A stretch of 64,000 bases of DNA from Selaginella moellendorffii (GCF_000143415.4 NW_003314305.1:1336834-1400833), one strand, 5' to 3'; shown: positions 1 to 41,370, numbered from the stretch's first letter. The notes: generated by a model from the letters alone, not told the origin. Program-made: numbers and translations.

Positions 1-136
1 CCATGGAGAAATCGAGGAGACAAGACTGAAAAGGAAGAATTTAAACGCTAGGAGCTAAGAGCTACGCATTAAAGAAGTTTTTGGAAACTTTAATCGTGAA
101 CTAGGAGCTAGAAACAGGGAAGAAAAAAAAATGTAC

Positions 137-3400: not shown

Positions 3401-5760
3401 GATAAATCTTCAAGATGGAGCCGCTGGTGGCTAGATGCTTTTGCATGGGTTCAATCATCGAGCCAACGAAGTGACCACCTATTGGAACGAATAAAGCACG
3501 GGCTGGAAGATGTAAATCGTGCTGGTGGTCGGAATGCTTCTAGTCTTGTTCTAAGGTATGTTTTCCTTATCTTTCTCGGGAGGTAATCTAGTGAGCATGT
3601 AGATACCACGACCTCAACGGCCTCAAGTTCTTACTAAGCCAGGAGTTGGATGCTATCCATGAGACTCGTGACCACGTCCTGAGTCGCTTGCTTGAAGTGG
3701 ATGGCGGGATGCAGAATCCGAATCCCGATTATGTGCAGCGCGCTGGACAATGTTCCCAGTGCCAGCCTAGACACACTGGGATAACTTGTGTTCATTGTGC
3801 GATTGATCTCATGTTTCAGGTACAATCTAGTTCTTTCTTGTGTGGTTTCTGACATTGTCAGTGTGGATAAACAGAAATATGCAAATAGGCTATTTTACTT
3901 GACGTCCCGAGCAGCTGAATTAGATGGCATTGTCACTGCAGAAGACGCCTTTGTTTCTCAAGTACGTTCACTGGTTAAGGGAAACAAGGAAACTGAGACG
4001 AACACAGGCAGGAGAAAAGGAGCAGCAGTAGCTGCGGTAAGGCAACTTCTTTTTGTTTTTCTAACTTTTTTCTTTTGTTTTTCTTTGCTTCGAGCTTAAA
4101 TATTTCTTTTCACAGGTTACGCACAGATGTTCTGAAACGGAAATGGTTTTAAAGATTTTGCTTGCATACATGAAAGCGGAAACGAACCTTGAGGAGGATG
4201 AGATAGAAGCCGCAAAGAAGCATCTCGAGTATCTTGAAGTAAACACTCCTGTGCTTATTTGTACGTCTGTTTGACAAACCGTGTCAATTCAGGCATTGCG
4301 TAGCGAATATGCAGCGGCGAGACGCTTGACAACAGCACAACAATTAGTTCTAACTGCATTGGACGAGCTGAGCATGTCGACAACAAGGCTATGTTTGCAA
4401 GGTGCCAAGGCTGCAGACGGCAATCCTTTTGGTGATGAAGGCTACGAGATTGCAATTAGAAACGCGGAGCTTACCAACGAAAAATTTGTTGCTGTTGAGA
4501 ATCTATCTCGTGTGAAGAGGCAGCTCAGATACTTGAAGGTATTAGGCTTAAGTTTTCTTTTATTCGCAGCTTCCTCTCATTTCCGGATTGCAGGGTCTAA
4601 GGAATAAGAAGGACGAGGGGCATAACAGTTTGGAAGGAGAAATTTGCCCAGTTTGCCACGATGGCATAGAATCTGGAGCAATGGTCCTTCCGTGCGGCCA
4701 TTTGCTTTGTGGCAAGTGTAAGTTTTCGGTGTCTTACCTTGTTGGTTTCCTGAGCAAATCTTCGTTTTATTTCGCAGGTTTGAATCTTATTGTGAACCGC
4801 CAGAAAGCACCAGCGAACGGTGCTGATTTCAAGCGCATTGCATGTCCAACGTGCAGACAACAGACTTATGTCTCTAATATTGCTTATGCCAATGCTGAAG
4901 GGACTTCTTCAAAAATTGCGGAAAACCTCCAGGAAGAAGAAGAGGACGAAGAAAAATCTATAACCGTGGCAGGGTCGTACGGAACAAAGGTAATCTGGCT
5001 TTGTCGTCTGCTGTTTATTTTAATTTTTTTGCAATTTGAAGATTGAAGCTGTCGTCAGGAGAATTCTTAGTCTGAAAGAAGACGATCCGTTTGTGAAAAT
5101 TCTTGTGTTCTCGACGTGGCAAGAAGTGCTGGACTTGTTAGAACACGCACTGAAGAGCAACAAGCTCAGCTGGGTTCGATTAAAGCAGCGCAGGTAACAT
5201 CGATAATCTGTTTTACTTTTACTCATTTGCTCGTTTTGTGTTTTTCACAGGCAAATGGGTTCTTCCATCCTGGAATTTAAGAAGGAGAACGTCCAAGTCA
5301 TGTTACTGCCCATACAACATGGTGCCAATGGCCTGAACTTAATAGAGGCCCAACACGTTATTTTGGTGGAGCCTTTGCTCAATCCGGCAGTAGAAGCTCA
5401 GGCTATCAATCGAGTCCACCGGATTGGCCAACGTCTAAAGACACTTGTACATAGATTCATTGTAAGTTACGTACGTTTCTTCTGTTTTCCAATTACTGAC
5501 GACATTTCCAGATACGTAACACTGTGGAGGAGAACATCTACAAAATGAACCAGCAGAAGACGAACCTCCTTCCAATGAAACAAAAAGAGCAGCCTCTTTC
5601 AGCAAATGACATGAACAGCTTACTAGCTTGGGACGAACCGAAAGAGAACACCCCCACTTGTTCTACTCCTGATACTTTCCGAGATTTAACTCCGGCTCAA
5701 GCTGCTGGTGCTGCTGCTGAATCGCGGCTCTTGCGACTACAGGCCAACGCTTGCCTATAG
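457..5760 (+). CDS. SHPRH: E3 ubiquitin ligase / SNF2-family helicase SHPRH, multi-exon, apparently intact
   Basis: Spliced ORF pieces give GGILA-DEMGLGKT (motif I), PHD finger (CICG..MVQCDHCHVWQHTSCV), ATLIVCP, WWRICLDEAQ, WCVSGTPIQ, LRLRQACCHPQV, RING (CPVC..LPCGHLLC..CPTCR) and HELICc (GANGLNL..QAINRVHRIGQ); short GT-AG introns e.g. 1071-1123, 1322-1380, 1443-1496, 1900-1952, 2166-2221, 2478-2528, 2895-2949. Confidence 0.93.
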
Positions 5761-5899
5761 ATTCCTTGTAAGTACTTTCTCTTGCATGTCCGGATTCTGA
5801 ACCTTTGTATTTTCTAGCAGAGAAGGAACATTCTTTAATCGAAAGATGAGCTTTCTCATAAAGGTAAGGTTTTCGGGGTTTAGCTAGCTAGCAACAGAG

Positions 5900-8272
5900 A
5901 TGGGTGCCAAGTTTCAGCCCCTTCCTCGCTTCTACTGGACGAAGGAACAGATTGCTGCGATCAGAGACCTGTGCCGTGACGACGATCTCTACGTGAAGAC
6001 GAAGTATGGTAGGAAGCTGAGGCCGCCGCCTCGTCCGCGACTAAGTCGAGAGCAGGAACGCTTTGTTCGCGCAGACCCTCAAGCAGGCTTGGATAGAATC
6101 AGTGGGCAGTGGGTAGCACTCCAACACCAGCTCGGGAAGAAGCCTTACACAGCCGAGGAGCAGGAAGGCAACTACGTGGGTCCGATTCTGGGTCACAAGC
6201 AATACAGGCGCGAGCTCCATCTTCACAGGGGACAGAAGCAGTGGAATGTCCATGCAGTCGGGGACAAGTTTCTGGTCTACGAGACACTTCCTCCCGCGAC
6301 CGACACTGGTGATGATCCTCCGGTGCTTTGTGGTCGCGACAAGTTCGTCATTGGTCGCCCTCTGTCAGTAACAATGGACAACCGGGCGACGAATGTTTCC
6401 TCGTCATGGAACTCGTTTCCAGTGTGGAGCTTGCCAGAAGAAGGCAAAGAGGGAACGATCGCTCTGCCGGGGAACTATATGGTGCCGAGCAGTAAGGTGG
6501 CGCTGCCGGGTTTAGTTCCAGGCAAAGGAGCGCTAGTCTTCGATGCCTTGTACGAGACTGTGAAGGAAGGAGGAGCGAGCTGGAGCTCCGAGATGGTTGA
6601 GAAGCTGGACAGGCTCAAGCGTGGGATAACGCACCCCCACCAGGTCTGCGTGGTTCTCAAGAAGATCAAGCACGACGCATCTCTCTCGCTCAAGCTCTTT
6701 ACGTGGGCCAAGACGATCCCAGGCTTCAAGCACGACTTGGTAAACTACTCGACGATGATCATGATCTTGGGAGATGACGGGAACTATCTCATGGCCGAGG
6801 CACTTTTTGTTGAGATCCAGGAGCTCGGGCTTCGCCTTGACACGTTTGCAGTGAACAACATGATCCGCTGCTACACAAGAGTGAACCGGATCCAGGAAGC
6901 TCTCGACCTCTACAGGAAGATGCCATACTTTGGCTGTCACCCGGACAATTGCACCTTCGGCCTCCTCATCGACTGGTGCGGCAAGTTCGGCTCCCGGAAG
7001 GAGCTCCAGCGAATCTTCCTCGACTTGAGAGCCTCCCCCCGCAATGCCGACGCGCAGACGTTCAACACAATGATCCACAACTTCTGCAAGCAGCGGGACT
7101 TCGCAAACGCCAGGGAAGCTGCCAACCAGATGAAAGCCTGGGGGATTCCATTCTCCTCTGCAACGTACGCCATCCTCATCCACATGTACGCCAAGGCTCG
7201 AGACTCGAAAGCAGCGGCAGAGCTCTACGCGGACTACCTCCGCTCCGGCCTAGAGCCAAACTTGATCGTCTACAACAACGTGATACTGAGTTACGGTTCC
7301 AGCGGCTTCCCTGGCCATGCGCAGAACATCCTGGGTGATATACGAAAGGCCGGCCTCGCTCCAGATCGATTCACGTACTGCACGCTCATAAGTTCGTGGG
7401 CGAGAGCCGGAGCTATGCTGCAAGCCCGGCGATGGTTCAACAAAGCCTGCAAGACGAAGGCCGGTCCAAGCATCGAGATGTGCAACGCGCTCATCGATGG
7501 CTACCTCAAGGCCCGAGAAGTGGAACCGGCTAAGTTCATCCTCACCAAAGTCATGCCGGAGAGAGGCGTGGAGCCGACGCTACAAACGTACACGATCCTC
7601 CTGGGCCACTACACGAGCAGCGTCAAGGTGGCGGACTCGAGAGCAGTGAGAGAGATGATGAAGTCGTCCTCGAAACCAGCAGCAGCAGCAGCAGGAAGAG
7701 GAGGAGGAGATGATCATCCCGGTGTGGACGAGTTCCTGAACGAGATCCTGCAAGGCCTCCGCGCGATCAAGGAGCTCAAGAGCTACTCGAGGGAGTTTTT
7801 CCGCAAGCTGAGGATGGACAAGCCTCCTCGCTGGGGGCGATGGCTGGCGGATGCTCTCGTCAACCATCTCCACTGCTTTGGCTACGCTCGCGAGGCCTTC
7901 TACGTGTGGGAGGGTGTCTCCTCCACAGAGCTCTACCCGAGAGGGATCTGGGAGGACTGGCAGGGAGCGTGGTTTATCTGGCTCCAGGATATGAGCTCCG
8001 GGACTGCGATGGTGGCGCTCACCAGTGGATTGATCGTGTCCAGGCGGAAGCTCGCGCGGGGATTCGAGAGGCCGGAGCGAGTGATCATCGTGTGTGGCTA
8101 CGCGTCGGACAAGAGCAAGGAGGTGACCCATGCAGTGAACAGGACGCTGGTGGCTCTAGACTCGCCGTTTGAGCCTTTCATCTCTATGGGGAGATTTATG
8201 TGCGAGGGGAACTTGTTTAGAGACTGGCTGTGGGAGAAGCAAGTTGCTATAGAGCTCACCATGGATGCTTAG
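5900..8272 (+). CDS. Intronless P-class PPR protein with C-terminal SMR-like domain (At1g18900/At1g74750-like), copy 1, intact, 790 aa
   Basis: PGFKHDLVNYSTMI followed by ~35-aa PPR repeats (..TFNTMIHNFCK.., ..TYCTLISSWARAG.., PTLQTYTILL); C-terminal WFIWLQDMSSGTAMVAL..PERVIIVCG..SPF..GRF matches the SMR pattern of this subgroup. Confidence 0.88.
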   Translation: MGAKFQPLPRFYWTKEQIAAIRDLCRDDDLYVKTKYGRKLRPPPRPRLSREQERFVRADPQAGLDRISGQWVALQHQLGKKPYTAEEQEGNYVGPILGHKQYRRELHLHRGQKQWNVHAVGDKFLVYETLPPATDTGDDPPVLCGRDKFVIGRPLSVTMDNRATNVSSSWNSFPVWSLPEEGKEGTIALPGNYMVPSSKVALPGLVPGKGALVFDALYETVKEGGASWSSEMVEKLDRLKRGITHPHQVCVVLKKIKHDASLSLKLFTWAKTIPGFKHDLVNYSTMIMILGDDGNYLMAEALFVEIQELGLRLDTFAVNNMIRCYTRVNRIQEALDLYRKMPYFGCHPDNCTFGLLIDWCGKFGSRKELQRIFLDLRASPRNADAQTFNTMIHNFCKQRDFANAREAANQMKAWGIPFSSATYAILIHMYAKARDSKAAAELYADYLRSGLEPNLIVYNNVILSYGSSGFPGHAQNILGDIRKAGLAPDRFTYCTLISSWARAGAMLQARRWFNKACKTKAGPSIEMCNALIDGYLKAREVEPAKFILTKVMPERGVEPTLQTYTILLGHYTSSVKVADSRAVREMMKSSSKPAAAAAGRGGGDDHPGVDEFLNEILQGLRAIKELKSYSREFFRKLRMDKPPRWGRWLADALVNHLHCFGYAREAFYVWEGVSSTELYPRGIWEDWQGAWFIWLQDMSSGTAMVALTSGLIVSRRKLARGFERPERVIIVCGYASDKSKEVTHAVNRTLVALDSPFEPFISMGRFMCEGNLFRDWLWEKQVAIELTMDA

Positions 8273-8677
8273 AATTAATATGTAATTAGCGCATTAATGG
8301 GAGGGTAAAAAGGACAAAGATTCGTTGGATCTAGCCTTTTGCTTTGCTTTTTCTTAAGCTAGGAATTTTCTTAGGCTGCAAATTAGCACTTATGGATGTA
8401 AGAGCGAGCCTTATGTTGTTTCAACTCAGAGGAAGCTGATGAGCTGAACACCAATGCATTGAGATGTATGATTGAGATCTATAACATAGAATATTGGGAA
8501 AGTAAACATTATGGTTTGTTTGGAACTTCTTTGAAAGTGTAAGACTACAAAGAGATTGCAGACAACAAGTTGCGTTGTCAAACTTTATATATATAATATA
8601 TATATACATTTCAAGTACCCATTATTTAAACAACGATGCCCAGAGCTGTTTATTTTATATAAATACAGCATCATCTT

Positions 8678-9438
8678 CTAGGCAAGCTGGAGTAGATCAT
8701 CCTCCTTGACGCACAGCTGGTGCCCCTGACGGTTGTAGAGCTTGCAACCTTCCCTGAGTGGCTTCTTGCAAGTGTGGCAAGAGTTGAAGTCGAGCGCAAC
8801 ACTTTTTGGACCTGGGCAGACATAGGAAGCAAACCCACATTCGAGCGTGCAGGCTTTACCAGGTCCTGAGACGCATACTGATTTGCCATGCCCCAAGTCC
8901 ATGCAACCTTGAGGAATGGTGCAACAAGTAGCGCAGCTGCCTGGCTTCCAAGGATGGACAGTGCCTCCACAAATCTCCACGGCATCCTTCAAGCAGGAGT
9001 TGTCATCACCATTTGGCAGTGGTGCACCAGTCTTTAAATTGTAGAGATGACAGCCATTCGAAGGCTCCTTACCCGGTGGGAGCACAGAAATTGGAATTCG
9101 GTTAGTCCATCGGGATGGGCAGACTTTGATTTTTGGTGGAAGACAAATTGGGAGGCAAGCACGAGCAGGGGAGGTGCCACCAAGACAAACTGGACTGCCA
9201 GTTCCAGGCTCGAGATATATGCATCCAGGCTCAAGCGTACAGCAATTGGAGCATTCGTCCAGAGTGACAACAGCATCACTACAAACCTGGAGACGATGGC
9301 CGCTGGCTGCAAAATCATCTTGACAAGGCATTCAAGAAGTCAGTCCTGAAAGAAAGAATCAAAACTTGGAGATCAACCTGCAGATATCAGAAGTAGCTGA
9401 AAGCTTAGGATAGTGAGGAACAAGAATGAAGCTGCCAT
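8678..9438 (-). CDS. Secreted multi-domain potato type II (Pin-II, I20)-like proteinase inhibitor, copy 1 (229 aa; exons 9438-9378, 9306-8678)
   Basis: Signal peptide MAASFLFLTILSFQLLLISA|ASG split by a 71-nt phase-1 intron; 24 Cys; motifs CxxCC-x5-C-x9/11-C...KACTLEC-x6-C match Pin-II repeats. Confidence 0.8.
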
Positions 9439-9770
9439 GTTGTTGTGGTGCTGAACCTCGGGCTGTTTGAATTTATAGTCACACAGTGGCATGCGATCGA
9501 TCTCTACAAAAATCTCACGTTTTTTCCGGACTTGAAAGTTGCGTATGGATTGTACTGATCGGGGGCCACCTAGCCTGGCTCTCTGTGGTGAAACAAATCA
9601 TATACTTCCAGAGAGGTGTCCCATCAGTAGTTTGATCGGTGAGGTCCGATGTGGGGCGACGTGGCCGGAAATACAAAGGATTGCATGCCACGTCATAATA
9701 GACGAGGTTAGCGAAGCGGCCATGGCGGGGCTGCTCGGCCATGGCGCTTCTTTCAACGTGGCCAGGCTGG
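9439..9770 (-). promoter_or_regulatory. Pin-II promoter: TATA box plus ACGT-core (T/G-box, G-box-like) and CGTCA motifs
   Basis: TATAAAT on - strand at 9471-9477; CACGTT at 9516-9521 (kept in all five copies); GACGTGGC ~9658; GCCACGTCA ~9687; AACGTGG ~9754. Confidence 0.5.
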
Positions 9771-10509
9771 GAGCACTAGGGTAGCAGCTCACAGCGCTGT
9801 CACAGCAATGTGCTATCCGATCGATCGATCTGGGTCTCGGGTTTAGTTTCTAGAGGTTTCCGGCTTCTCCACAGCTAGTGGTTTCGTCCTCCGGCCTATG
9901 GCACCGCTAGAAAATCCTCCAAACCTTGAAGAACAGATCGAGATTTAGGAGCAGCGAGAGATTGCACGAAAGATCTTGCGTTGGGAGCTCGACCGCAATT
10001 CTGCCTAGCTGCTCTATCGAAGATTTGCAAGTCGAGCGTTCAAACAGAGTGCTCAAGAGATTGAGCTCCGTCCATAAATTCAATCCTTTCTGGGCTCCGA
10101 CCAATGTGATGCCGCGATTCAAATTTCTGGCGCTTGGTGCCTCAACATGGGTAATACCATACGTATTGAAATATCACATATTGAATGATTTTGGAACAGC
10201 TTATGCACAACAAGGGAACTCTTTTGATTATATATACACATTTGTGGGCTCAGCTGGAGGCATTTACAATATACAAATTGATTTCCTTGTCCTGATTTTA
10301 ATCTTGGAGTCCCTCTCTTTTGCCAATGTGAAAATTACTTTTGCCTGTTGAACTTTACTAGACCAAAGACAAGAAATCCATTTGCATCCATTGCATTGTG
10401 GTTTAATGCATCTAGTTGTTGGGTGCTACATGTATACTTATTCTTTCAAAGCCTAGAAAAAAAAAAATCATTTGCTGCATGTGATTAATCCTTTATCTTT
10501 TTTCTAGAA

Positions 10510-12259: not shown

Positions 12260-14796
12260 GATTTGCATGGCTTGCTTAGATTCTTACAAGCAGAGCCGTT
12301 TGACAATCATACTTGGTGGCAGCAAAGCTATAAAACATCCTTGCGAGGTACTATGTGTTTTTTCCTTTTTATTGTAAGTAACACTCGTTGCTCTCCAGGA
12401 AGGAAAAATGGGAGCAGTTGACTTTGCTCATTCCTTTTTCCGTGAGATTATGTGGCGGTCTATGAAGATCGATGTCATAGACCAGCTAGATATTCCTCCT
12501 CAAGAAGAGCGAATTACATGGCTCAAGTTTTCGGGTGTTGAGAACCACTTTTATAGGCAACAACACGAGCAATGCGTGAAGAGAGCCAGAGAAGCTATTG
12601 AGAAGTACTCATTAGGTGCTGGTCGACCTCTAAATCATATGAATACCTCAAAGTTAATGAACCCCTTGTTGAAGCTGCGACAAGCTTGTTGCCATCCTCA
12701 AGTGGGGAGTTCGGGAGTACGCTCGTTGCAGGCATCACCACGCTCATTGCAGGCCGATGGATGAAGTCTTGGAGGTAAGGAACCTTGGTATTAGAGTCTT
12801 CAGGTCCTAATTGAAAAAGCTAAAACTGAAGGAGAAGAAGCTCAACGAGATCTTGTTGATTCGTTGAACGGACTGGCAGGTCTGGCGATTATCGAGGAAA
12901 ACATCCCCATGGCTGTCTCCATTGACCGAGAAGCACTAGCAGCCGCGGAGGAAAATGCGACTAATTTTGAAGTTGATCCGCTTCAGAAAGTCCATATTTT
13001 ACACAATTTGGAAGAGTCACTCAGAAACTGCAAGGATGACGCATTGAGCAAAATTCCAAGAACTCTGAGGGATGATATGCTGATCAGTCAATGCGACGAA
13101 TTACGAAGGAAGTACGTCAGTGGCCAGTATGCAAATCTTGCTGCGGCTCAGCACGCTGCACACAAAGAAGTATTATTGATTTCTTTTCAAAAAAGCCCTT
13201 CTTTATCCTGCAGATCAGTCTGATGATAAATCTTCAAGATGGAGCCACTGGTGGCTAGATGCTTTTGCATGGGTTCAAACATCGAGCAAACGAAGTGACC
13301 ACCTATTGGAACGAATAAAGCACGGGCTGGAAGATGTAAATCGTGCTGGTGGTCGGAATGACAATAGCACAACAATTAGTTCTAACTGAATTGGACGAGC
13401 TGAGCATGTCGACAACAAGGCTATGTTTGCAAGGTGCCAAGGCTGCAGACGGCAATCCTTTTGGTGATGAAGGCTACGAGATAGCAATTAGAAACGCGGA
13501 GCTTACCAACGAAAAATTTGTTGCTGTTGAGAATCTATCTCGTGTGAAGAGGCAGCTCAGATACTTGAAGGTATTAGGCTTAAGTTTTCTTCTATTCGCA
13601 GCTCCTCTCATTTCCGGATTGCAGGGTCTAAGGAATAAGAAGGACGAGGGGCATAACAGTTTGGAAGGAGAAATTTGCCCAGTTTGCCACGATGGCATAG
13701 AATCTGGAGCGATGGTCCTTCCATGCGGCCATTTGCTTTGTGGCAAGTGTAAGTTTTTGGTGTCTTACTTTGTTGGTTTCCTGAGCAAATCTTCATTTTA
13801 TTTCGCAGGTTTGAATCTTATTGTGGACCGCCAGAAAGCACCAGCTAACGGTGCTGATTTCAAGCGCATTGCATGTCCAACGTGCAGCAGACTTATGTCT
13901 CTAATATTGCTTATGCCAATGCTGAAGCGGCTTCTTCGAAAATTGCGGAAATCCTCCAGGAAGAAGAAGAGGACGAAGAAAAATCTATAACCGTGGCAGG
14001 GTCGTACGGAACAAAGGTAATCTCGCTTTGTCGTCTGCTTTTTATTTTAATTCTATTGCAACTTTGAAGATTGAAGCTGTCGTCAGGAGAATTCTTAGTC
14101 TGAAAGAAGACGATCCGTTTGTGAAAATTCTTGTGTTCTCGACGTGGAAAGAAGTGCTGGACTTGTTAGAACACGCACTGAAGAGCAACAAGCTCAGCTG
14201 GGTTCGACTAAAGCCTCTCAGGTAATATCGATAATCTGTTTTACTTTTACTCATGTGCTCGTTTTGTGTTTTTCAGACAAATGGGTTCTTCCATCTTGGA
14301 ATTTAAGGAGAACATCCAAGTCATGTTACTACCCATACAACATGGTGCCAATGGCCTGAACTTAATAGAGAACACGTTATTTTGGTGGAGCCTTTGCTCA
14401 CCCCGGCAGTAGAAGCTCAGGCTATCAATCTAGTCCACCGGATTGGCCAACGTCTTAAGACACTTGTACATAGATTCATTGTAAGTTACGTACGTTTCTT
14501 CTGTTTTCCAATTACTGACGACATTTCCAGATACGTAACACTGTGGAGGAGAACATCTACAAAATGAACCAGCAGAAGACGAACCTCCTTCCAATGAAAC
14601 AAAAAGAGCAGCCTCTATCAGCGAATGACATGAACAGTTTACAATGAATCGCTTGGGACGAACCGAAAGAGAACACAGCTACTTCAAATACAGTGGTTCT
14701 ACTCCTGATACTTTCCGAGATTTAACTCCGGCTCAAGCTGCTGCTGCTGCTGCTGAATCGCGGCTCTTGCGACTACAGGCCAACGCTTGTCTATAG
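12260..14796 (+). pseudogene. SHPRH: 5'-truncated SHPRH pseudogene, copy 2
   Basis: Starts mid-exon (equivalent to ~2391), lacks ATPase motifs I-III and PHD; ~790-bp internal deletion at ~13360; frameshifts. Confidence 0.9.
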
Positions 14797-14937
14797 ATTC
14801 TTTGTAAGTACTTTCTGTTGCATGTCCGGATTCTGAACCTTCGTATTTTCTGGCAGAGAAGGAACATTCTTTAGTCAAACGATGAGCTTTCGGTAAGTTT
14901 TTCTGTTGGCGAGGGGTTTAGCTAGCTAGCAACAGAG

Positions 14938-17289
14938 ATGGGTGCCAAGTTTCAGCCCCTTCCTCGCTTCTACTGGACGAAGGCTGCGATCAGAGACCTG
15001 TGCCGGGACGACGATCTCTACGTGAAGACGTAGTATGGTAGGAAGTTGAGGCCGCCGCCTCGTCCGCGACTAAGTCGAGAGCAGGAACGCTTTGTTCACA
15101 CAGACCCTCAAGCAGGCTTGGATAGAATCAGTGGGCAGTGGGTAGCACTCCAACACCAGCTCGGGAAGAAGCAGGAAGGCACCTACATGGGTCCGATTCT
15201 GGGTCACAAGCAATACAGGTGCGAGCTCCATCTTCACAGGGGACAGAAGCAATGGAATGTCCATGCAGTCGGGGACAAGTTTCTGGTCTACGAGACACTT
15301 CCTCCTGCGACCGACACCGGTGATGATCCTCCGGTGCTTTGTGGTCGCGACAAGTTCGTCATTGGTCGGCCTCTGTCACTAGACAACCGGGCGACGAATG
15401 TTTCCTCGTCGTGGAACTCGTTTCCAGTGTGGAGCTTGCCAAAAGAAGGCAAGGAGGGAACGATCGCTCTGCCGGGGAACTATATGGTGCCGAGCAGTAA
15501 GGTGGCGCTGCCGGGTTTAGTTCCAGGCAGGGGAGCGCTAGTCTTCGATGCCTTGTACGAGACTGTGAAGGAAGGAGGAGTGAGCTGGAGCTCCGAGATG
15601 GTTGAGAAGCTGGACAGGCTCAAGCATGGGATAATGCACCCCCACCAGGTCTGCGTGGTTCTCAAGAAGATCAAGCACGACGCATCTCTCTCGCTCAAGC
15701 TCTTTACGTGGGCCAAGACGATCCCAGGCTTCAAGCACGACTTGGTAAACTACTCGACGATGATCATGATCTTGGGAGATGACGGGAACTATCTCATGGC
15801 CGAGGCACTTTTTGTTGAGATCCAGGAGCTCGGGCTTCGCCTTGACACGTTTGCAGTGAACAACATGATCCGCTGCTACACAAGAGTGAACCGGATCCAG
15901 GAAGCTCTCGACCTCTACAGTAAGATGCCATACTTTGGCTGTCACCCGGACAATTGCACCTTCGGCCTCCTCATCGACTGGTGCGGCAAGTTCGGCTCCC
16001 GGAAGGAGCTCCAACGGATCTTCCTCGACTTGAGAGCCTCCCCCCGCAATGCCGACGCGCAGACGTTCAACACAATGATCCACAACTTCTGCAAGCAGCG
16101 GGACTTCGCAAACGCCAGGGAAGCCGCCAACCAGATGAAAGCCTGGGGGATTCCATTCTCCTCTGCAACGTACGCCATCCTCATCCACATGTACGCCAAG
16201 GCTCGAGACTCGAAAGCAGCGGCAGAGCTCTACGCGGACTACCTCCGCTCCGGCCTAGAGCCAAACTTGATCGTCTACAACAACGTGATACTGAGTTACG
16301 GTTCCAGCGGCTTCCCTGGCCATGCGCAGAACATCCTGGGTGATATACGAAAGGCCGGCCTCGCTCCAGATCGATTCACGTACTGCACGCTCATAAGTTC
16401 GTGGGCGAGAGCCGGAGCTATGCTGCAAGCCCGGCGATGGTTCAACAAAGCCTGCAAGACGAAGGCCGGTCCAAGCATCGAGATGTGCAACGCGCTCATC
16501 GATGGCTACCTCAAGGCCCGAGAAGTGGAACCGGCTAAGTTCATCCTCACCAAAGTCATGCCGGAGAGAGGCGTGGAGCCGACGCTGCAAACGTACACGA
16601 TCCTCCTGGGCCACTACACGAGCAGCGTCAAGGTGGCGGACTCGAGAGCAGTGAGAGAGATGATGAAGTCGTCCTCGAAACCACCACCACTACCAGCAGC
16701 AGCAGCAGCAGCAGCAGGAGGAGGAGGAGGAGGAGATGATCATCCTGGCGTGGACGAGTTCCTGAACGAGATCCTGCAAGGCCTCCGCGCGATCAAGGAG
16801 CTCAAGAGCTACTCGAGGGAGTTTTTCCGCAAGCTGAGGATGGACAAGCCTCCTCGCTGGGGGCGATGGCTGGCGGACGCTCTCGTCAACCATCTCCACT
16901 GCTTTGGCTACGCTCGCGAGGCCTTCTACGTGTGGGAGGGGGTCTCCTCCACAGAGCTCTACCCGAGAGGGATCTGGGAGGACTGGCAGGGAGCGTGGTT
17001 TATCTGGCTCCAGGATATGAGCTCCGGGACTGCGATGGTGGCGCTCACCAGTGTGTCCAGGCGGAAGCTCGCGCGGGGATTCGAGAGGCCGGAGCGAGTG
17101 ATCATCGTGTGTGGCTACGCGTCGGACAAGAGCAAGGAGGTGACCCATGCGGTGAACAGGACGCTGGTGGCTCTAGACTCGCCGTTTGAGCCTTTCATCT
17201 CTATGGGGAGATTTATGTGCGAGGGGAACTTGTTTAGAGACTGGCTGTGGGAGAAGCAAGTTGCTATAGAGCTCACCATGGATGCTTAG
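14938..17289 (+). pseudogene. PPR-SMR copy 2: TAG at 15031, but long downstream ORF intact (possible restart at ATG 15187)
   Basis: Near-identical to 5900-8272; AAG>TAG at 15031-15033; only in-frame indels afterwards. Confidence 0.75.
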
Positions 17290-17700
17290 AATTAATATGT
17301 AATTAGCGCATTAATGGGAGGGTAAAAAGGACAAAGATTCGTTGGATCTATCCTTTTGCTTTGCTTTTTCTTAAGCTAGGAATTTTCTTAGGCTGCAAAT
17401 TAGCACTTATGGATGTGATATGGCAAGAGCGAGCCTTATGTTGTTTCAACTCAGGAAGCTGATGAGCTGAACACCAATGCATTGTGATGTATGATTGAGA
17501 TCTATAACATAGACTATTGGGAAAGTAAACATTATGGTTTGTTTGGAACTTCTTTGAAAGTGCAAGACTACAAAGAGATTGCAGACAACAAGTTGCGTTG
17601 TCAAACTTTATATATATAATATATATATATACATTTCAAGTACCCGTTATTTAAACAACGATGCCCAGAGCTGTTTATTTTATAAATACTGCATCATCTT

Positions 17701-18461
17701 CTAGGCAAGCTGGAGTAGATCATCCTCCTTGACGCACAGCTGGTGCCCCCGACGGTTGTAGAGCTTGCAACCTTCCCTGAGTGGCTTCTTGCAAGTGTGG
17801 CAAGAGTTGAAGTCGAGCGCAACACTTTTTGGACCTGGGCAGACATAGGAAGCAAACCCACATTCGAGCGTGCAGGCTTTACCAGGTCCTGAGACGCATA
17901 CTGATTTGCCATGCCCCAAGTCCATGCAACCTTGAGGAATGGTGCAACAAGTAGCGCAGCTGCCTGGCTTCCAAGGATGGACAGTGCCTCCACAAATCTC
18001 CACGGCATCCTTCAAGCAGGAGTTGTCATCACCATTTGGCAGTGGTGCACCAGTCTTTAAATTGTAGAGATGACAGCCATTCGAAGGCTCCTTATCCGGT
18101 GGGAGCACAGAAATTGGAATTCGGTTAGTTCCTCGGGATGGGCAGACTTTGATTTTTGGTGGATGACAAATTAAGGGGCAAGGACGAAAAGGGGAGGTGC
18201 CACCAAGACAAACTGGACTGCCAGTTCCAGGCTCGAGATATATGCATCCAGCCTCAAGCGCACAGCAACTGGAGCATCCGTCGAGAGTGACAACAGCATC
18301 ACTACAAACCTGGAGACGATGGCTGCTGGCTGCAAAATCATCTTGACAAGGCATTCAAGAAGTCAGTCCTGAAAGAAAGAATCAAAACTTGGAGATCAAC
18401 CTGCAGATATCAGAAGTAGCTGAAAGCTTAGGATAGTGAGGAACAAGAATGAAGCTGCCAT
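17701..18461 (-). CDS. Pin-II-like inhibitor, copy 2 (reactive loops CPLIC / CTLEC)
   Basis: Same two-exon structure, intact ORF, all 24 Cys retained. Confidence 0.8.
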
Positions 18462-20139
18462 GTTGTTGTGGTGCTGAACCTCGGGCTGTTTGGATTTATA
18501 GTCAGACAGAGTCTTATCTATGTGATGACTTGGCATCTGATCGATCTCTACAAAATCTCACGTTTTTTCCGGACTTGAAAGTTGCGTATGGATTGTACTG
18601 ATCGGGGGCCACCTAGCCTGACTCTCTGTGGTGAAACAACTCATATACTTCCAGAGAAGTGTCCCATCAGTATTTTGATTAGGGCGACGTGGCCGGAATG
18701 AATTTCCACGTTGGTTAGCGGCATGCCACGTCATAATAGACGAAGCGGCCATGGCAGGGCTGCTTGGCCATGGCGCTTCTTTCAACGTGGCCAGGCTGGG
18801 AGCACTAGGGTAGCAGCTCACAGCGCTGCCACAGTAATGTGCTATCCGATCGATCGATCTTGGTCTCGGGTTTAGCTTCTAGAGGTTTCCGGCTTCGCCA
18901 CAGCTAGTGGTTTCTTCCTCCGGCCTATGGCACCGCTAGAAAATCCTCCAAACCGACTCAGCCCTTGAAGAACAGATCGAGATTTAGGAGGAACAAGAGA
19001 TTGCACGAAAGGTCTTGCGTTGGGAGCTCGACCGGTGCCTAGCTGCTCTATGGAAGATTTGCCGTTCAAACGGAGAGTGCTCATGAGATTGAGCTCCATC
19101 TATAAATTCAATCCTTTATGAGATATGAGTGCCACGTCTGCATTTGACAAGGTGATGCCGCGATTCAAATTTCTGGCGCTTGGATGCCCGGTGCCTCAGC
19201 ATGGGTAATACCATATGTATTGAAATATCACATATTGAATGATTTTGGAACAGCTTATGCACAACAAGGGAACTCTTTTGATTATATATACACATTTGTG
19301 GGCTCAGCTGGAGGCATTTACAATATACAAATTGATTTCCTTGTCCTAATTTTAATCTTGGATTCCCCTTCTTTTGCCAATGTCAAAATTACTTTTGCCT
19401 GTTGAACTTTACTAGACCAAAGACAAGAAATCCATTTGCATCCATTGCATTGTGGTTTAATGCATTTAGTTGTTGGGTGTTACATGTATACTTATTCTTT
19501 CAAAGCCTAGAAAAAAAAAATCATTTGCTATAATCATACTCCTTTACCTTTTTCTAGAATATAATCTAAACCTTAAACCCTAAACCCGTGGCAAAATTGA
19601 AGGCAACAGGTCTTGTGTGACTTTAAGAATTGCATGCAGTAACAACTGGATCAATCAAGTGGTTGAGATCAAAATCTTCAAATTCTATAATAAGCCAAAA
19701 CATGAGACTCATGAGGTATTGGCTTGTAGTATTTATTTCCAAAGGCAATTACTGAAGCCTGGTGATTCAAGGCAAAAAATTGATGCCCTTTTGGCCCTTT
19801 TTGAGCCATTTTACATGGGTGTTTTTAAAAATGCCCTTTAAATATTAGGTAAAAATTACCAAAATTTCTTTTACGTGAAGGATGCGCTTCTATATAGCCC
19901 TTTTGTTCAAGGGCAATAAAATAAAATATTCTTTCAGAATATTTTTCTCTTTCTTAATGGACAATGAATATTCCGAATTAAATGAGCAAGGAGTCTCGAT
20001 GACTCTCTCAATTGATTAGAATTTGGATCGCATGCCATAGTTGTCTTGTTTAAGTTTTACACAGAAGAAATTGAAAGGGCAACAAGAGTCATCATTCAGT
20101 TCTCATACTGTACATTCAATCTTTTCTATTTCCATGCAT

Positions 20140-21043: not shown

Positions 21044-23215
21044 CTTTTATAGGCAACAACACGAGCAATGCGTGAAGGGGGCCAGAGAAGCTATTGAGAA
21101 GTACTCATTAGGTGCTGGTCGACCTCAAGTTCTTACTAAGCCAGGAGTTGGATGCTCTCCATGAGACTCGTGACCACGTACTGAGTCGCTTACTTGAAAT
21201 GGATGGCGGGATGCAGAATCCGAATCCCGATTATGTGCAGCGCGCTGGACAATGTTCCCAGTGCCAGCCTAGACACACTGGGATAACCTGTGCTCATTGT
21301 GCTATTGATCTCATGTTTCAGGTACAATCTACTTCTTTCTTGTGTGGATAAACAGAAATATGCAAATAGGCGATTTTACTTGACGTCCCGAGCAGCTGAA
21401 TTAGATGGCATTGTTACTGCAGAAGACGCCTTTGTTTCTCAAGTACGTTCACAGGCAGGAGAAAAGGAGCAGCAGTAGCTGCGGTAAGGCAACTTCTTTT
21501 TGTTTTTCTAACTTTTTTCTTTTGTTTTTCTTTCCTTCGAGCTTAAATATTTCTTTTCACAGGTTACGCACAGATGTTCTGAAACGGAAATGGTTTTAAA
21601 AATTTTACTTGCATACATGAAAGCGGAAACGAACCTTGAGGAGGATGAGATAGAAGCCGCAAAGAAGCACCTCGAGTACCTTGAAGTAAACACTCCTGTG
21701 CTTATTTGTAAGTCTGTTTGACAAACCGTGTCAATTCAGGCATTGCGTAGCGAATATGCAGCGGCGAGACGCTTGACAACAGCACAACAATTAGTTCTAA
21801 CTGCATTGGACGAGCTGAGCATGTCGACAACAAGGCTATGTTTGCTTGCAAGGTGCCAAGGCTGCAGACGGCAATCCTTTTGGTGATGAAGGCTACGAGA
21901 TAGCAATTAGAAACGCGGCGCTTACCAACGAAAAATTTGTTGCTGTTGAGAATCTATCTCGTGTGAAGAGGCAGCTCAGATACTTGAAGGTATTAGGCTT
22001 AAGTTTTCTTCTATTCGCAGCTCCTCTCATTTCCGGATTGCAGGGTCTAAGGAATAAGAAGGACGAGGGGCATAACAGTTTGGAAGGAGAAATTTGCCCA
22101 GTTTGCCACGATGGCATAGAATCTGGAGCAATGGTCCTTCCGTGCGGCCATTTGCTTTGTGGCAAGTGTAAGTTTTTGGTGTCTTACTTTGTTGGTTTCC
22201 TGAGCAAATCTTCATTTTACTTCGCAGGTTTGAATCTTATTGTGGACCGCCAGAAAGCACCAGCTAACGGTGCTGATTTCAAGCGCATTGCATGTCCAAC
22301 GTGCAGACAACAGACTTATGTCTCTAATATATGCTGAAGCGGCTTCTTCGAAAATTGCTGAAATCCTCCAGGAAGAAGAAGAGGACGAAGAAAAATCTAT
22401 AACCGTGGCAGGGTCGTACGGAACAAAGGTAATCTCGCTTTGTCGTCTGCTTTTTATTTTAATTCTTTTGCAAGTTTGAAGATTGAAGCTGTCGTCAGAA
22501 GAATTCTTAGTCTGAAAGAAGACGATCCGTTTGTGACAATTCTTGTGTTCTCGACGTGGCAAGAAGTGCTGGACTTGTTAGAACACGCACTGAAGAGCAA
22601 CAAGCTCAGCTGGGTTCGATTAAAGCAGCGCAGGTAACATCGATAATCTGTTTTACTTTTACTCATGTGCTCGTTTTGTGTTTTTCACAGACAAATGGGT
22701 TCTTCCATCTTGGAATTTAAGAAGGAGAACATCCAAGTCATGTTACTGCCCACACAACATGGTGCCAATGGCCTGAACTTAATAGAGGCCCAACACGTTA
22801 TTTTGGTGGAGCCTTTGCTCAATCCGGCAGTAGAAGCTCAGGCTATCAATCGAGTCCACCGGATTGGCCAACGTCTAAAGACACTTGTACATAGATTCAT
22901 TGTAAGTTACGTACGTTTCTTCTGTTTTCCAATTACTGACGACATTTCCAGATACGTAACACTGTGGAGGAGAACATCTACAAAATGAGCCAGCAGAAGA
23001 CGAACCTCCTTCCAATGAAACAAAAAGAGCAGCCTCTTTCAGCAAATGACATGAACAGCTTACTAGCTTGGGACGAACTGAAAGAGAACACATCTACTTC
23101 AAACACCCCCAGTGGTTCTACTCCTGATACTTTCCGAGATTTAACTCCGGCTCAAGCTGCTGCTGCTGCTGCTGAATCGCGGCTCTTGTGACTACAGGCC
23201 AACGCTTGCCTATAG
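21044..23215 (+). pseudogene. SHPRH: 5'-truncated SHPRH pseudogene, copy 3
   Basis: Enters at the equivalent of ~2679, jumps ~2760 to ~3625 at a CCTC microhomology; frameshifts; CGA>TGA near the end. Confidence 0.9.
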
Positions 23216-23356
23216 ATTCCTTGTAAGTACTTTCTCTTGCATGTCCGGATTCTGAACCTTTGTATTTTCTAGCAGAGAAGGAACATTCTTTAATCGAAAG
23301 ATGAGCTTTCGGTAAGTTTTTCTTTTGGCGAGGGGTTTAGCTAGCTAGCAACAGAG

Positions 23357-25555: not shown

Positions 25556-26124
25556 GAGCAAGGAGGTGACCCATGCGGTGAACAGGACGCTGGTGGCTCT
25601 AGACTCGCCGTTTGAGCCTTTCATCTCTATGGGGAGATTTATGTGCGAGGGGAACTTGTTTAGAGACTGGCTGTGGGAGAAGCAAGTTGCTATAGAGCTC
25701 ACCATGGATGCTTATATGTAATTAGCGCATTAGTGGGATGGTAAAAAGGACCAAGATTCGTTGGATCTAGCCTTTTGCTTTGCTTTATTTTTTCTTAAGT
25801 TCAGGTATTTAGGATTTTTCTTAGGCTGCAAATTAGCACATGGATGTGATAAGGCAAGAGCGAGCCATATGTTGTTTCAACTCAGAGGAAGCTGATGAGC
25901 TGGTTATGCATGATTTGTCTCTGTGGAGATCTATAACATGGAATACTGGGAAAGTAACCATTATGCCTAGGTAAAGTTTGTTTGGAACTTCTTCATAAGT
26001 GCAAGATTACAAAGAGATTGCAGACAACAAGTCTCGTTGTCAAACTTTACATATGTAATATATATACATTATTTAAACAACCATGCCCAGAGCTGTTTAT
26101 TTTATATAAATACAGCATCATCTT

Positions 26125-26885
26125 CTAGGCAAGCTGGAGTAGATCATCCTCCTTGACGCACAGCTGGTGCCCCTGACGGTTGTAGAGCTTGCAACCTTCC
26201 TTGAGTGGCTTCCTGCAAGTGTGGCAAGAGTTGAAGTCGAGCGCAACACTTTTTGGACCTGGGCAGACATAGGAAGCAGAGCCACATTTGAACGTGCAAG
26301 TTTTATCAGGTCCTGAGACGCATATCGATTTGCCATGCCCCAAGTCCAAGCAACCTTGAGGAATGCTGCAACAAGTAGCGCAGCTGCCTGGCGTCCAAGG
26401 ATGGACAGTGCCTCCACAAATCTCCACGGCATCCTTCAAGCAGGAGTTGTCATCACCATTTGGCAGTGGTGCACCAGTCTTTAAATTGTAGAGATGACAG
26501 CCATTCGAAGGCTCCTTACCCGGTGGGAGCACAGAAATTGGAATTTGGTTAGTCCATCGGGATGGGCAGACTTTGATTTTTGGTGGAAGACAAATTGGGT
26601 GGCAAGGACGAAAAGGGGCGGTGCCACCAAGACAAACTGGACTGCCAGTTCCAGGCTCGAGATATATGCATCCAGCCTCAAGCGTACAGCAATTGGAGCA
26701 TGCGTCCAGAGTGACAACAGCATCACTACAAACCTGGAGACGATGGCCGCTGGCTGCAAAATCATCTTGACAAGGCATTCAAGAAGTCAGTCCTGAAAGA
26801 AAGAATCAAAACTTGGAGATCAACCTGCAGATATCAGAAGTAGCTGAAAGCTTAGGATAGTGAGGAACAAGAATGAAGCTGCCAT
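26125..26885 (-). CDS. Pin-II-like inhibitor, copy 3 (reactive loops CHPIC / CTFKC)
   Basis: Intact two-exon gene, 24 Cys retained. Confidence 0.8.
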
Positions 26886-28007
26886 GTTGTTGTGGTGCTG
26901 AACCTCGGGCTGTTTGAATTTATAGTCACACAGTGGCATGCGATCGATCTCTACAAAAATCTCACGTTTTTTCCGGACTTGAAAGTTGCGTATGGATTGT
27001 ACTGATCGGGGGCCACCTAGCCTGGCTCTCTGTGGTGAAACAAATCATATACTTCCAGAGAGGTGTCCCATCAGTAGTTTGATCGGTGAGGTCCGATGTG
27101 GCGCCCTTATTAGGGCGACGTGGCCGGAAATACAAAGGATTGCATGCCACGTCATAATAGACGAGGTTAGCGAAGCGGCCATGGCGGGGCTGCTCGGCCA
27201 TGGCGGTTCTTTCAACGTGGCCAGGCTGGGAGCACTAGGGTAGCAGCTCACAGCGCTGTCACAGCAATGTGCTATCCGATCGATCGATCTGGGTCTCGGG
27301 TTTAGTTTCTAGAGGTTTCCGGCTTCTCCACAGCTAGTGGTTTCGTCCTCCGGCCTATGGCACCGCTAGAAAATCCTCCAAACCTTGAAGAACAGATCGA
27401 GATTTAGGAGCAGCGAGAGATTGCACGAAAGATCTTGCGTTGGGAGCTCGACCGCAATTCTGCCTAGCTGCTCTATCGAAGATTTGCAAGTCGAGCGTTC
27501 AAACAGAGTGCTCAAGAGATTGAGCTCCGTCCATAAATTCAATCCTTTCTGGGCTCCGACCAATGTGATGCCGCGATTCAAATTTCTGGCGCTTGGTGCC
27601 TCAACATGGGTAATACCATACGTATTGAAATATCACATATTGAATGATTTTGGAACAGCTCATGCACAACAAGGGAACTCTTTTGATTATATATACATAT
27701 TTGTGCAGTTGGAGGCATTTATACAATATACAAATTGATTTCCTTGGATTTCTTGTCTTTGGTCTAGTAAAATTCAACATTGGCAAAAGAGAACTCCAAG
27801 ATTAAAATCAGGACACCATTTGCATCCATTGCATTGTGGTTTAATGCATCTAGTTGTTGGGTGGTACATGTATACTTATTCTTTCAAAGCTAGAAAAAAA
27901 ATTTCATTTGCTACATGCAATCTAAACCCTAAACCCTAAACCTTAAATAGACACGTGAAAAAAGGGTGGCAACCCTTCAATTTTGATTTTAATGATGCTC
28001 CAATAAG

Positions 28008-28106
28008 CCATTTATCTCTATGGGGAGATTTATGTGCGAGGGGAACTTGTTTAGAGACTGGCTGTGGGAGAAGCAAGTTGCTATAGAGCTCACCATGGAT
28101 GCTTAG
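28008..28106 (+). pseudogene. 3'-terminal ~100-bp fragment of PPR-SMR marking the start of unit 4
   Basis: ATCTCTATGGGGAGA...ATGGATGCTTAG identical to 8178-8272, fused to spacer sequence. Confidence 0.85.
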
Positions 28107-28518: not shown

Positions 28519-29279
28519 CTAGGCAAGCTGGAGTAGATCATCCTCCTTGACGCACAGCTGGTGCCCCCGACGGTTGTAGAGCTTGCAACCTTCCCTGAGT
28601 GGCTTCTTGCAAGTGTGGCAAGAGTTGAAGTCGAGCGCAACACTTTTTGGACCTGGGCAGACATAGGAAGCAAACCCACATTCGAGCGTGCAGGCTTTAC
28701 CAGGTCCTGAGACGCATACTGATTTGCCATGCCCCAAGTCCATGCAACCTTGAGGAATGGTGCAACAAGTAGCGCAGCTGCCTGGCTTCCAAGGATGGAC
28801 AGTGCCTCCACAAATCTCCACGGCATCCTTCAAGCAGGAGTTGTCATCACCATTTGGCAGTGGTGCACCAGTCTTTAAATTGTAGAGATGACAGCCATTC
28901 GAAGGCTCCTTATCCGGTGGGAGCACAGAAATTGGAATTCGGTTAGTTCCTCGGGATGGGCAGACTTTGATTTTTGGTGGATGACAAATTAAGGGGCAAG
29001 GACGAAAAGGGGAGGTGCCACCAAGACAAACTGGACTGCCAGTTCCAGGCTCGAGATATATGCATCCAGCCTCAAGCGCACAGCAACTGGAGCATCCGTC
29101 GAGAGTGACAACAGCATCACTACAAACCTGGAGACGATGGCTGCTGGCTGCAAAATCATCTTGACAAGGCATTCAAGAAGTCAGTCCTGAAAGAAAGAAT
29201 CAAAACTTGGAGATCAACCTGCAGATATCAGAAGTAGCTGAAAGCTTAGGATAGTGAGGAACAAGAATGAAGCTGCCAT
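28519..29279 (-). CDS. Pin-II-like inhibitor, copy 4 (protein identical to copy 2)
   Basis: Intact; translated ORF identical to 17701-18354. Confidence 0.8.
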
Positions 29280-35322: not shown

Positions 35323-35463
35323 ATTCTTTGTAAGTACTTTCTGTTGCATGTCCGGATTCTGAACCTTCGTATTTTCTGGCAGAGAAGGAACATTCTTTAG
35401 TCAAAAGATGAGCTTTCGGTAAGTTTTTCTGTTGGCGAGGGGTTTAGCTAGCTAGCAACAGAG

Positions 35464-38193: not shown

Positions 38194-38957
38194 CTAGGCA
38201 AGCTGGAGTAGATCATCCTCCTTGACGCACAGCTGGTGCCCCTGACGGTTGTAGAGCTTGCAACCTTCCTTGAGTGGCTTCTTGCAAGTGTGGCAAGAGT
38301 TGAAGTCGAGCGCAACACTTTTTGGACCTGGGCAGACATAGGAAACAAAACCACATTCGCGCGTGCAGACTTTACCAGGTCCTGAGACGCATATTGATTT
38401 GCCATGCCCCAAGTCCAAGCAACCTTGAGGAATGGTGCAACAAGTAGCGCAGCTGCCTGGCGTCCAAGGATGGACAGTGCCTCCACAAATCTCCACGGCA
38501 TCCTTCAAGCAGGACTTGTCATCACCATTTACTGGCAGTGGTGCACCAGTCTTTAAATTGTAGAGATGACAGCCATTCGAAGGCTCCTTATCCGGTGGGA
38601 GCACAGAAATTGGAATTCGGTTAGTCCCTCGGGATGGGCAGACTTTGATTTTTGGTGGTTCACAAATTAAGGGGCAAAGACGAGAAGCAGAGGTGCCACC
38701 AAGACAAACTGGACTGCCAGTTCCAGGCTCTAGATATATGCATCCAGCCTTAAGCGCACAGCAATTGGAGCATTCGTCCAGAGTGACAACAGCATCACTA
38801 CAAACCTGGAGACGATGGCTGCCGGCTGCAAAATCATCATGACAAGGCATTCAAGAAGTCAGTCCTGAAAGAAAGAATCAAAACTTGGAGATCAACCTGC
38901 AGATATCAGAAGTAGCTGAAAGCTTAGGATAGTGAGGAACAAAAATGAAGCTGCCAT
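38194..38957 (-). CDS. Pin-II-like inhibitor, copy 5 (reactive loops CPLIC / CTREC)
   Basis: Intact, one-codon insertion (LPVNG), 24 Cys retained. Confidence 0.8.

Positions 38958-41334: not shown

Positions 41335-41370
<36 letters not shown>

Follow-up and report, generated by a model that had tools for sequence, protein, structure and literature searches.

Two predicted one-headed modules with local clasps in a Pin-II proteinase inhibitor from a tandem gene array of the lycophyte Selaginella moellendorffii

A gene for a multi-domain proteinase inhibitor of the Pin-II family (MEROPS I20) was analysed in a 64,000-nt stretch of the Selaginella moellendorffii genome (NW_003314305.1:1336834-1400833), and "the window" refers below to this whole stretch. 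The gene lies on the minus strand at 9438-8678 and, by reading of the sequence, consists of two exons encoding a precursor of 229 aa. We consider it likely that the product is a secreted, two-headed Pin-II inhibitor built of two one-headed modules with local clasps, and that its reactive loops are diversifying within a tandem array. Residue numbers refer to the 229-aa precursor. Searches were run with exon 2 or with the database protein XP_002980466.2, and the joined exons 1 and 2 were used for translation and codon counts.

Gene structure

The gene model comprised the following elements:

9378..9438, minus strand: exon 1, 61 nt (20 codons plus one base), with the ATG start and a hydrophobic signal peptide; also found in all five copies in the window
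9307..9377, minus strand: phase-1 intron of 71 nt with GT..AG borders (sequence reading), following codon 20 at the end of the signal peptide
8678..9306, minus strand: exon 2, with the whole mature protein (residues 21-229) and the TAG stop at 8680-8678

This reading bore out the 229-aa protein and the phase-1 intron at the signal peptide put forward by the original prediction, which had been made from the sequence alone. According to Barta 2002 (as cited in PMC2259423), Pin-II genes have two exons, with a phase-1 intron close to where the signal peptide ends; the Selaginella gene model has both features. A second AG acceptor is located 12 nt upstream; its use starts exon 2 at 9318, leaves an intron of 59 nt ending at 9319 and adds four residues (DDFA). 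The RefSeq model XP_002980466.2 uses this upstream acceptor, and the paralogues are annotated as 230/234-aa isoform pairs that differ by the four residues between the two acceptors. With 59 or 71 nt, the intron is short compared with the 100-200 nt reported for angiosperms.

Exon 2 was 100% identical to XP_002980466.2, "uncharacterized protein LOC9647732" of S. moellendorffii, which identifies the host as a non-seed plant, as had been expected. The 90% cluster of this protein contained 13 models from two S. moellendorffii scaffolds. The 251-aa RefSeq model begins at an upstream in-frame ATG at 9492 and gains 18 residues over 9439-9492. This start was rejected: the signal peptide would come to lie inside the protein, a TATAAAT motif (9474-9468) falls within the added stretch, and most paralogue models lack the extension. 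The Met at 9438, which is the start of the paralogue models in RefSeq/GenBank, is probably the true start, and the one at 9492 is probably an annotation artefact.

Cysteine layout

In the terms of Kong and Ranganathan (PMC2259423), a Pin-II repeat is divided into the H fragment, the CxxCC..C..C piece, and the L fragment, the CxxxC..C piece with the reactive loop. The mature protein has exactly 24 cysteines (Cys). Sixteen of them form two complete H-L units, the first with the spacing CxxCC-x5-C-x11-C then CxxxC-x7-C, the second with CxxCC-x5-C-x9-C then CxxxC-x6-C; outside these lie one N-terminal, three middle and four C-terminal Cys. The count, the spacings and the distribution were all found as originally described. 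All 24 Cys are unchanged in the five copies in the window, and the same number occurs in a second S. moellendorffii family (39-41% identical); together with the Pfam match given below, this shows that the pattern did not arise by accident. From the N-terminus to the C-terminus, the parts of the mature protein are as follows; L° designates a remnant of an L fragment, and the letters A and B refer to the first and second half of the protein (units A and B):

9278..9304, minus strand: L°A, L remnant with the last Cys only (Cys29), proposed N-terminal half of clasp A; aligns with 'VEIC' of unit B and with the last Cys of L (hhalign)
9119..9253, minus strand: inner inhibitory domain A (H1+L1, Cys39 to Cys83, 8 Cys); aligned Cys for Cys with Nicotiana alata C1/T1 and with tomato inhibitor-II residues 27-77
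9143..9157, minus strand: reactive loop 1 (C-LPI-C in this copy, residues 71-75); aligned to the C-x3-C reactive site of solved inhibitors
8996..9118, minus strand: H', degenerate H with one Cys (Cys106, 'GCHLYN') plus linker, proposed C-terminal half of clasp A; aligns with H'' 'GCKLYN' of unit B
8966..8995, minus strand: L°B, C-x7-C (Cys125, Cys133), L remnant in which the first Cys of the reactive loop is missing; would form the N-terminal half of clasp B
8816..8935, minus strand: inner inhibitory domain B (H2+L2, Cys145 to Cys184, 8 Cys); Cys pattern as in domain A, to which it was aligned
8837..8851, minus strand: reactive loop 2 (C-TLE-C in this copy, residues 173-177); matches the chymotrypsin-type C-TLN-C loop of 1FYB/2JZM, with the middle residue, Leu175, as presumed P1
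8711..8815, minus strand: H'', H fragment in which Lys stands for the third of five Cys (the other four are 197, 200, 208 and 219); would form the C-terminal half of clasp B; CATCC is matched to CHTCK by hhalign
8681..8710, minus strand: C-terminal tail of 10 residues, acidic then hydrophobic; short helix predicted at a pLDDT (predicted local distance difference test) below 50, invariant in the five copies

The conserved tail might, speculatively, act as a sorting signal to the vacuole.

Assignment to the Pin-II family

The original prediction had placed the protein in Pin-II (MEROPS I20 / PF02428), and the Pfam hidden Markov model PF02428 (Prot_inhib_II) agreed with it at 47.8-48.8 bits against a cut-off of 22.3 (E = 1.9e-12). 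A phmmer search of exon 2 against the PDB gave no match at E ≤ 1, and family profiles were needed to reach solved structures. The profile of the full-length family matched the two-domain N. alata inhibitor 1FYB (E = 2e-5). With the profile of a unit of ~105 residues, 1FYB was reached at E = 4e-10 and tomato inhibitor-II (1OYV_I/1PJU) at 1.5e-7, followed by 2JZM, 1TIH, 5ZFO and 4SGB, and all convincing profile matches were Pin-II structures. The language-model search of the ESM Atlas returned Pin-II clusters only, at scores of 0.75-0.77, which is the level of a lead. One automatic database name differs from this assignment: UniRef D8QVL2, an allele or paralogue of the query family, is called 'Bowman-Birk serine protease inhibitors family domain-containing protein', contrary to PF02428.

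In the printed profile alignments, the H+L stretches of both units align contiguously to 1FYB, 1TIH, 2JZM and 1OYV on all 8 Cys. Both complete units are therefore real Pin-II domains in permuted H-L order, as are the structural domains of Solanaceae inhibitors; the two 8-Cys units of the original prediction were recovered in this way, with model superposition in agreement. The two C-x3-C loops align to the reactive sites of the solved inhibitors and are the most variable parts among the copies. Each loop would be bracketed by two disulfides, as predicted from the Cys pattern of the Pin-II reactive site.

The only stretch that passes PF02428 alone is L2+H'' (48 bits); the H+L pieces score ~14 bits and unit A alone 16.7 bits. 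Taken at face value, these scores would fit beads on a string read in the Pfam L-H register, that is, L1+H' (4-5 Cys) and L2+H'' (7 Cys), each placed after an extra 6-Cys module of a different fold, and the description of Santamaría et al. (2014) implies this register. We regard such an arrangement as very improbable. It leaves both loop Cys of L1 and the first Cys of L2 without canonical partners, and the H fragments that precede them carry exactly those partners. The profiles align H+L contiguously to solved H-L domains, as described above, and the AlphaFold (AF2) model packs H1 with L1. The Pfam model itself is built in L-H order and, in Solanaceae too, scores sequence repeats and not structural domains (PMC2259423); the order of the model therefore explains why the catalogue speaks of "domains lacking one or three Cys".

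A second family in S. moellendorffii

Besides the query protein, an exhaustive phmmer search of 1.84 billion representatives retrieved a second family of S. moellendorffii and a metagenome protein of 808 aa. The last was judged spurious by eye, with different-looking repeats and no Pin-II Cys pattern. Family 2 is the larger one (LOC9648705, LOC9649237/8, LOC9649242, LOC9655501/3, LOC9660822/4 and LOC9639023) and showed 41% identity in this search and 38-39% over the full-length alignment. It has the same layout of 24 Cys, arranged twice in the order L°-H-L-H* (H* standing for H' and H''), and variable loops of its own, C-TRE/TLE-C and C-ALV/PLV/VQV-C. The C-x7-C of L°B corresponds to a C-x8-C in family 2, where it follows a long linker, and family 2 isoforms differ by a 16-residue insert in this inter-unit linker. 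Family 2 scores 16.1 bits on PF02428, below the cut-off of 22.3, and is therefore missed by Pfam-based counts of Selaginella Pin-II genes. One of its UniRef members is automatically named '4Fe-4S ferredoxin-type domain-containing', probably an artefact of the Cys pattern.

The architecture was not found outside S. moellendorffii by the exhaustive search, which is insensitive to short Cys-rich domains; a word search with the unit profile (candidates of 58-185 aa), insensitive in the same respect, gave no match at E ≤ 1. A single Cys-rich domain of 50 residues is below the reach of the exhaustive search, and its blank therefore says little about ferns or other lycophytes.

Internal duplication and apparent paired loss of cysteines

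Units A and B, compared with halves from both S. moellendorffii families, align end to end at ~35% identity with 10 Cys positions in common. Unit B has four Cys beyond those of unit A in both families, and at the last of these four positions, the last H Cys, unit A has Pro in either family. A tree of the units groups A against B across the families with support of 88/86, and the duplication therefore predates the family split.

A deeper repeat was detected within the units. The comparison of L°+H with L+H* by hhalign was collinear over 42 columns (E = 0.0025), and the Cys matched: Cys125/Cys133, the C-x7-C at the N-terminus of unit B, fell on the second and third Cys of L, CATCC fell on CHTCK, and the GC motifs and the final Cys of the two halves fell on each other. 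This match of half against half indicates that each unit is derived from two ancestral L-H repeats in the order L°-H-L-H*.

Tomato inhibitor-II has one domain made up of the inner H+L and another assembled from the fragments at its two termini (PMC2259423). According to Li et al. (2011, PMC3073943), disulfides link C1 in the first repeat to C6 in the second, and C2 to C4. Unit B of the Selaginella protein is without exactly C1 (in L°) and C6 (in H''), the same pair that is missing in potato Pi7C. Unit A is without the C1/C6, C2/C4 and C5/C8 pairs and retains one predicted clasp disulfide. The Cys missing from the outer fragments thus appear, from this bookkeeping, to be bonding partners that were lost in pairs, as in potato Pi7C and Pi6C. 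Unit A keeps 10 Cys and unit B 14; with these even counts, all 24 Cys find canonical partners within their own unit if each unit has a local clasp.

A module of ~105 residues, L°-H-L-H*, is duplicated in tandem in the mature protein. The inner H+L of each module is expected to fold into a circularly permuted domain in which the 8 Cys form the four canonical disulfides and a C-x3-C loop is exposed; by analogy with known inhibitors, this loop may block a serine protease in the usual substrate-like way. The outer L° and H* would come together as a clasp domain closing the module, from which the reactive loop and the Cys bonded to the loop have been lost. In clasp A, the N-terminal Cys (Cys29) would pair with the 'GC' of the middle piece (Cys106); in clasp B, the middle C-x7-C would pair with the C-terminal half. 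The protein would be two-headed, with one head per module. Head 2, with Leu at the presumed P1, might target chymotrypsin- or subtilisin-like enzymes; head 1 (Leu-Pro-Ile) is the less certain inhibitory site. The protein is probably secreted or may possibly be sent to the vacuole.

Each module looks like a "bracelet" of the tomato inhibitor-II type with an intact inner inhibitory domain and a degenerate clasp. Neither L°A nor L°B has a C-x3-C loop, and a module thus has one reactive site in place of the two of a bracelet. With one head per module, the Selaginella module is therefore a variant of the bracelet type and not a member of it. The summary of the original prediction, two active plus two structural domains, was judged fair.

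Predicted structure

The AF2 model of the mature protein had a pLDDT of 63. Residues 19-67 of the model (H1+L1) superposed on residues 19..73 (domain II) of tomato inhibitor-II 1PJU with a Z of 4.1 and a root-mean-square deviation (rmsd) of 3.0 Å over 47 residues, and on the single-domain Capsicum inhibitor 5ZFO with a Z of 2.7 and an rmsd of 2.7 Å over 46 residues. These Z values are low for domains of this small size; no unrelated structure scored comparably to the Pin-II chains for H1+L1. Unit B modelled alone reached a pLDDT of 72 and a predicted template modelling (TM) score of 0.65, with its two ends as the most confident parts. In a Foldseek search with this model, the only matches with E <0.1 were four tomato inhibitor-II chains. 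The best three (E = 4e-3 to 6e-3, prob 0.91-0.93) were collinear with unit B over 108-109 columns, as for 1PJU, at 28% identity; the fourth (1OYV_I) had E = 0.06, prob 0.41, 110 columns and 24% identity. In the AlphaFold check suggested by the original prediction, Pin-II structures were the sole credible matches, at low Z and with pLDDT values of 63 and 72.

Local clasps versus one global clasp

The original prediction had closed the protein differently, by pairing the lone N-terminal Cys with the C-terminal half. Spelled out, this would be one global bracelet across four repeats, as in the N. alata precursor NaProPI, in which H' and the middle C-x7-C make a 3-Cys domain and H'' closes on the lone N-terminal Cys. 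Such closure is the rule for all solved or processed multi-repeat Pin-II proteins of Solanaceae (PMC2259423), it has the same inner H-L domains as the local-clasp model, and the total Cys count is even. It nevertheless leaves Cys125 and Cys197 without canonical partners, in domains with 3 and 5 Cys. The alignment of A with B puts the N-terminal Cys on Cys133 and Cys106 on Cys208, and self-contained modules with 10 and 14 Cys follow from it. In family 2, the stretch from H' to the C-x8-C is 22-38 residues long and varies between isoforms, unlike a connection within a domain. Finally, unit B folds alone in the model, with its two ends as the most confident parts. We therefore regard a global N-to-C clasp as unlikely, and two local clasps are clearly preferred because of the internal-repeat alignment, the Cys bookkeeping and the second family.

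Several observations weigh against the arrangement with two working, locally closed modules. The repeat signal of hhalign is modest, with a probability of 12% and an E of 0.0025 that holds for one comparison. In the bookkeeping, C3-C7 and C5-C8 are carried over from N. alata T1 (C14-C50 and C7-C25). Both AF2 models are middling (pLDDT 63 and 72), and the global TM score to 1PJU is ~0.3. The VIA-align superposition that spans both ends of unit B is weak (model 1..96 against 1PJU 6..108; Z 2.0, rmsd 3.5 Å, 46 residues). The presumed P1 of loop 1 in this copy is Pro, a residue that a working head would not usually carry there.

Tandem array and variability of the reactive loops

Searches with tblastn followed by gene models revealed five intact full copies in the window, all on the minus strand:

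8678..9438, minus strand: copy 1, the gene under study, 229 aa
17701..18461, minus strand: copy 2, 229 aa, intact
26125..26885, minus strand: copy 3, 229 aa, intact
28519..29279, minus strand: copy 4, 229 aa, coding sequence identical to copy 2
38194..38957, minus strand: copy 5, 230 aa, intact; upstream acceptor AG changed to TG

The copies reside in a segmental repeat of ~6.5 kb with 91-95% identity, present four times in tandem (about 4003-10481, 13359-19854, 21450-27917 and 33811-39005), and in an extra short copy of 1.4 kb at 28006-29451; each repeat copy has one Pin-II gene. Each long repeat copy also contains a GC-rich stretch (e.g. 5959-6983) that is ~82% identical to 49811-50763. At the intron end of copy 5 (~38830-38845), the upstream acceptor AAG reads ATG, and a canonical AG is left for the 71-nt intron only; for LOC9647735, the locus matching this copy, RefSeq nonetheless lists an X1 isoform with the four extra residues.

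Among the mature codons of the five copies, 32 varied in the amino acid and only 4 were synonymous-only. The 24 codons around the two reactive loops contained 13 of the 32 variable codons (expected 3.7; p = 1.8e-6), and none fell on a Cys codon (p = 0.015). Loop 1 occurs as C-LPI-C, C-PLI-C and C-HPI-C, loop 2 as C-TLE-C, C-TRE-C and C-TFK-C. The presumed P1 of head 2 thereby switches among Leu, Arg and Phe, with Phe in copy 3 and Arg in copy 5, and the set across both loops is Leu, Pro, Phe and Arg. Pairwise dN/dS (the ratio of nonsynonymous to synonymous substitution rates) was 1.1-2.0 among the copies; values above 1 rest on 2.5-6 synonymous differences per pair and do not reach significance (binomial p = 0.13). 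Synonymous sites, too, have diverged more in the loops, and part of the pattern is therefore due to gene conversion in the scaffold. The difference suggests that conversion keeps the scaffolds alike and leaves the loops distinct.

Near-identical scaffolds with differing loops fit, at the level of sequence, a defence repertoire under diversifying selection. Variation focused on the loops is expected of working canonical inhibitors in an arms race. The same pattern of loop variability was described for Solanaceae by Kong and Ranganathan (PMC2259423).

The dN/dS values at or above 1 might also be read as drift of the loops in an array that does not encode working inhibitors, either decaying duplicates or Cys-rich peptides in another role (antimicrobial or signalling). 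The Pro at the presumed P1 of loop 1 in two copies and the decayed remnants of the family in the same window would agree with that. We give this possibility slightly less credence even than the L-H register discussed above: all 5 full-length copies have intact open reading frames and splice sites, the 24 Cys codons are free of changes, and a second family, at no more than 39-41% identity, has kept the layout. The changes are not spread evenly but are concentrated in the reactive loops, as is classic for canonical inhibitors, and the C-TLE-C and C-TRE-C loops resemble working loops of Solanaceae.

Comparison with known Pin-II proteins

Two-domain Pin-II proteins of Selaginella are already published, and the gain of the present analysis is a refinement, not a discovery. 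Santamaría et al. (2014, PMC4189545) counted four I20 genes for S. moellendorffii, whose products each contain two Pin-II domains, lack 1 or 3 canonical Cys and have six additional Cys; no I20 genes were reported in moss or algae, and the Selaginella branch stood apart from angiosperms. PINIR (2021, PMC8188708) also includes S. moellendorffii. The novelty that the original prediction claimed for the lineage and the multi-domain state consequently does not hold, and multi-domain forms of this lineage are in part already catalogued (PMC4189545, PMC8188708). The catalogued entries represent the same species and gene family, with two domains and with missing and extra Cys; the tandem array, the hypervariability of the loops and the second, sub-threshold family are not described there. 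New here is the detailed domain layout, a double one-headed bracelet with paired Cys loss, to which the logic of the sequence points and which the models support weakly. Text searches, including locus tags, found no functional or structural study of Selaginella Pin-II.

Tomato inhibitor-II and potato PI-II (1PJU, 1OYV) have the order L-H-L-H, collinear with one Selaginella module over 108-110 columns at 24-28% identity. They share with it the permuted inner H+L domain and very similar C-TRE-C loops, and their termini form a second domain, as is proposed for the Selaginella module. Tomato inhibitor-II has two working heads and 16 Cys, whereas a Selaginella module would have one head and has 10 or 14 Cys. 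The Selaginella protein further differs in consisting of two fused modules, in having no linker peptides of the Solanaceae type and in its lycophyte lineage.

The closest parallel to the Cys loss is provided by potato Pi7C and Pi6C (Li et al. 2011, PMC3073943), in which bonding Cys distant in the sequence were lost in pairs and the first (clasp) reaction centre was knocked out, with the second intact. Pi7C has lost the same pair (C1, IIC6) as unit B. The potato variants are recent and confined to potato, whereas the Selaginella loss has been kept in two families 39-41% identical, twice per protein, and unit A goes beyond the potato variants with only one predicted clasp disulfide left.

Among the solved structures, N. 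alata NaProPI C1/T1 (1FYB, 1TIH, 2JZM) gave the best sequence match (E = 4e-10). The H-L permuted 8-Cys domain is shared, and the C-TLN-C / C-PRN-C loop type of the NaProPI domains is found in the Selaginella protein as well. NaProPI has six repeats, one global clasp and processing linkers of the EEKKN type; the Selaginella protein is made up of four pieces derived from repeats, is probably closed by two local clasps and has no linkers of this kind.

As a tentative scenario, to which we give somewhat less than even credence, lycophytes may have built a multi-repeat, domain-swapped Pin-II independently of Solanaceae, fixed a previously undescribed form, two fused one-headed bracelets with pairwise loss of disulfides, and kept it until the families were ~40% identical, with loops that are still diversifying. 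If true, nature would have tried circular permutation and domain swapping of the Pin-II fold a second time, and at a far earlier date. The lycophyte version would make it possible to examine independently what favours the H-L permuted domain and the clasp, and how disulfides vanish in pairs. The array would represent a small natural library of reactive loops on one scaffold, and Pfam-based counts of Selaginella Pin-II genes are underestimates.

Pin-II remnants in the window

Decayed Pin-II remnants were detected on the minus strand at 60762-61061 and 42687-43027. Their H fragment can still be recognised, with CH in place of CC; the reading frame is disrupted, and nothing is left of the second half. 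Both sit in two segments of ~750 bp that are 90% identical (42070-42785 and 60213-60963), and the neighbouring open reading frames (59651-60673 and 42046-42482) look by eye like N-termini of cytochrome P450. Between the Pin-II array and the segment with the P450 and the Pin-II remnant lies an AT-rich block at 40001-42000, with a GC content of 0.265 compared to 0.41-0.57 elsewhere.

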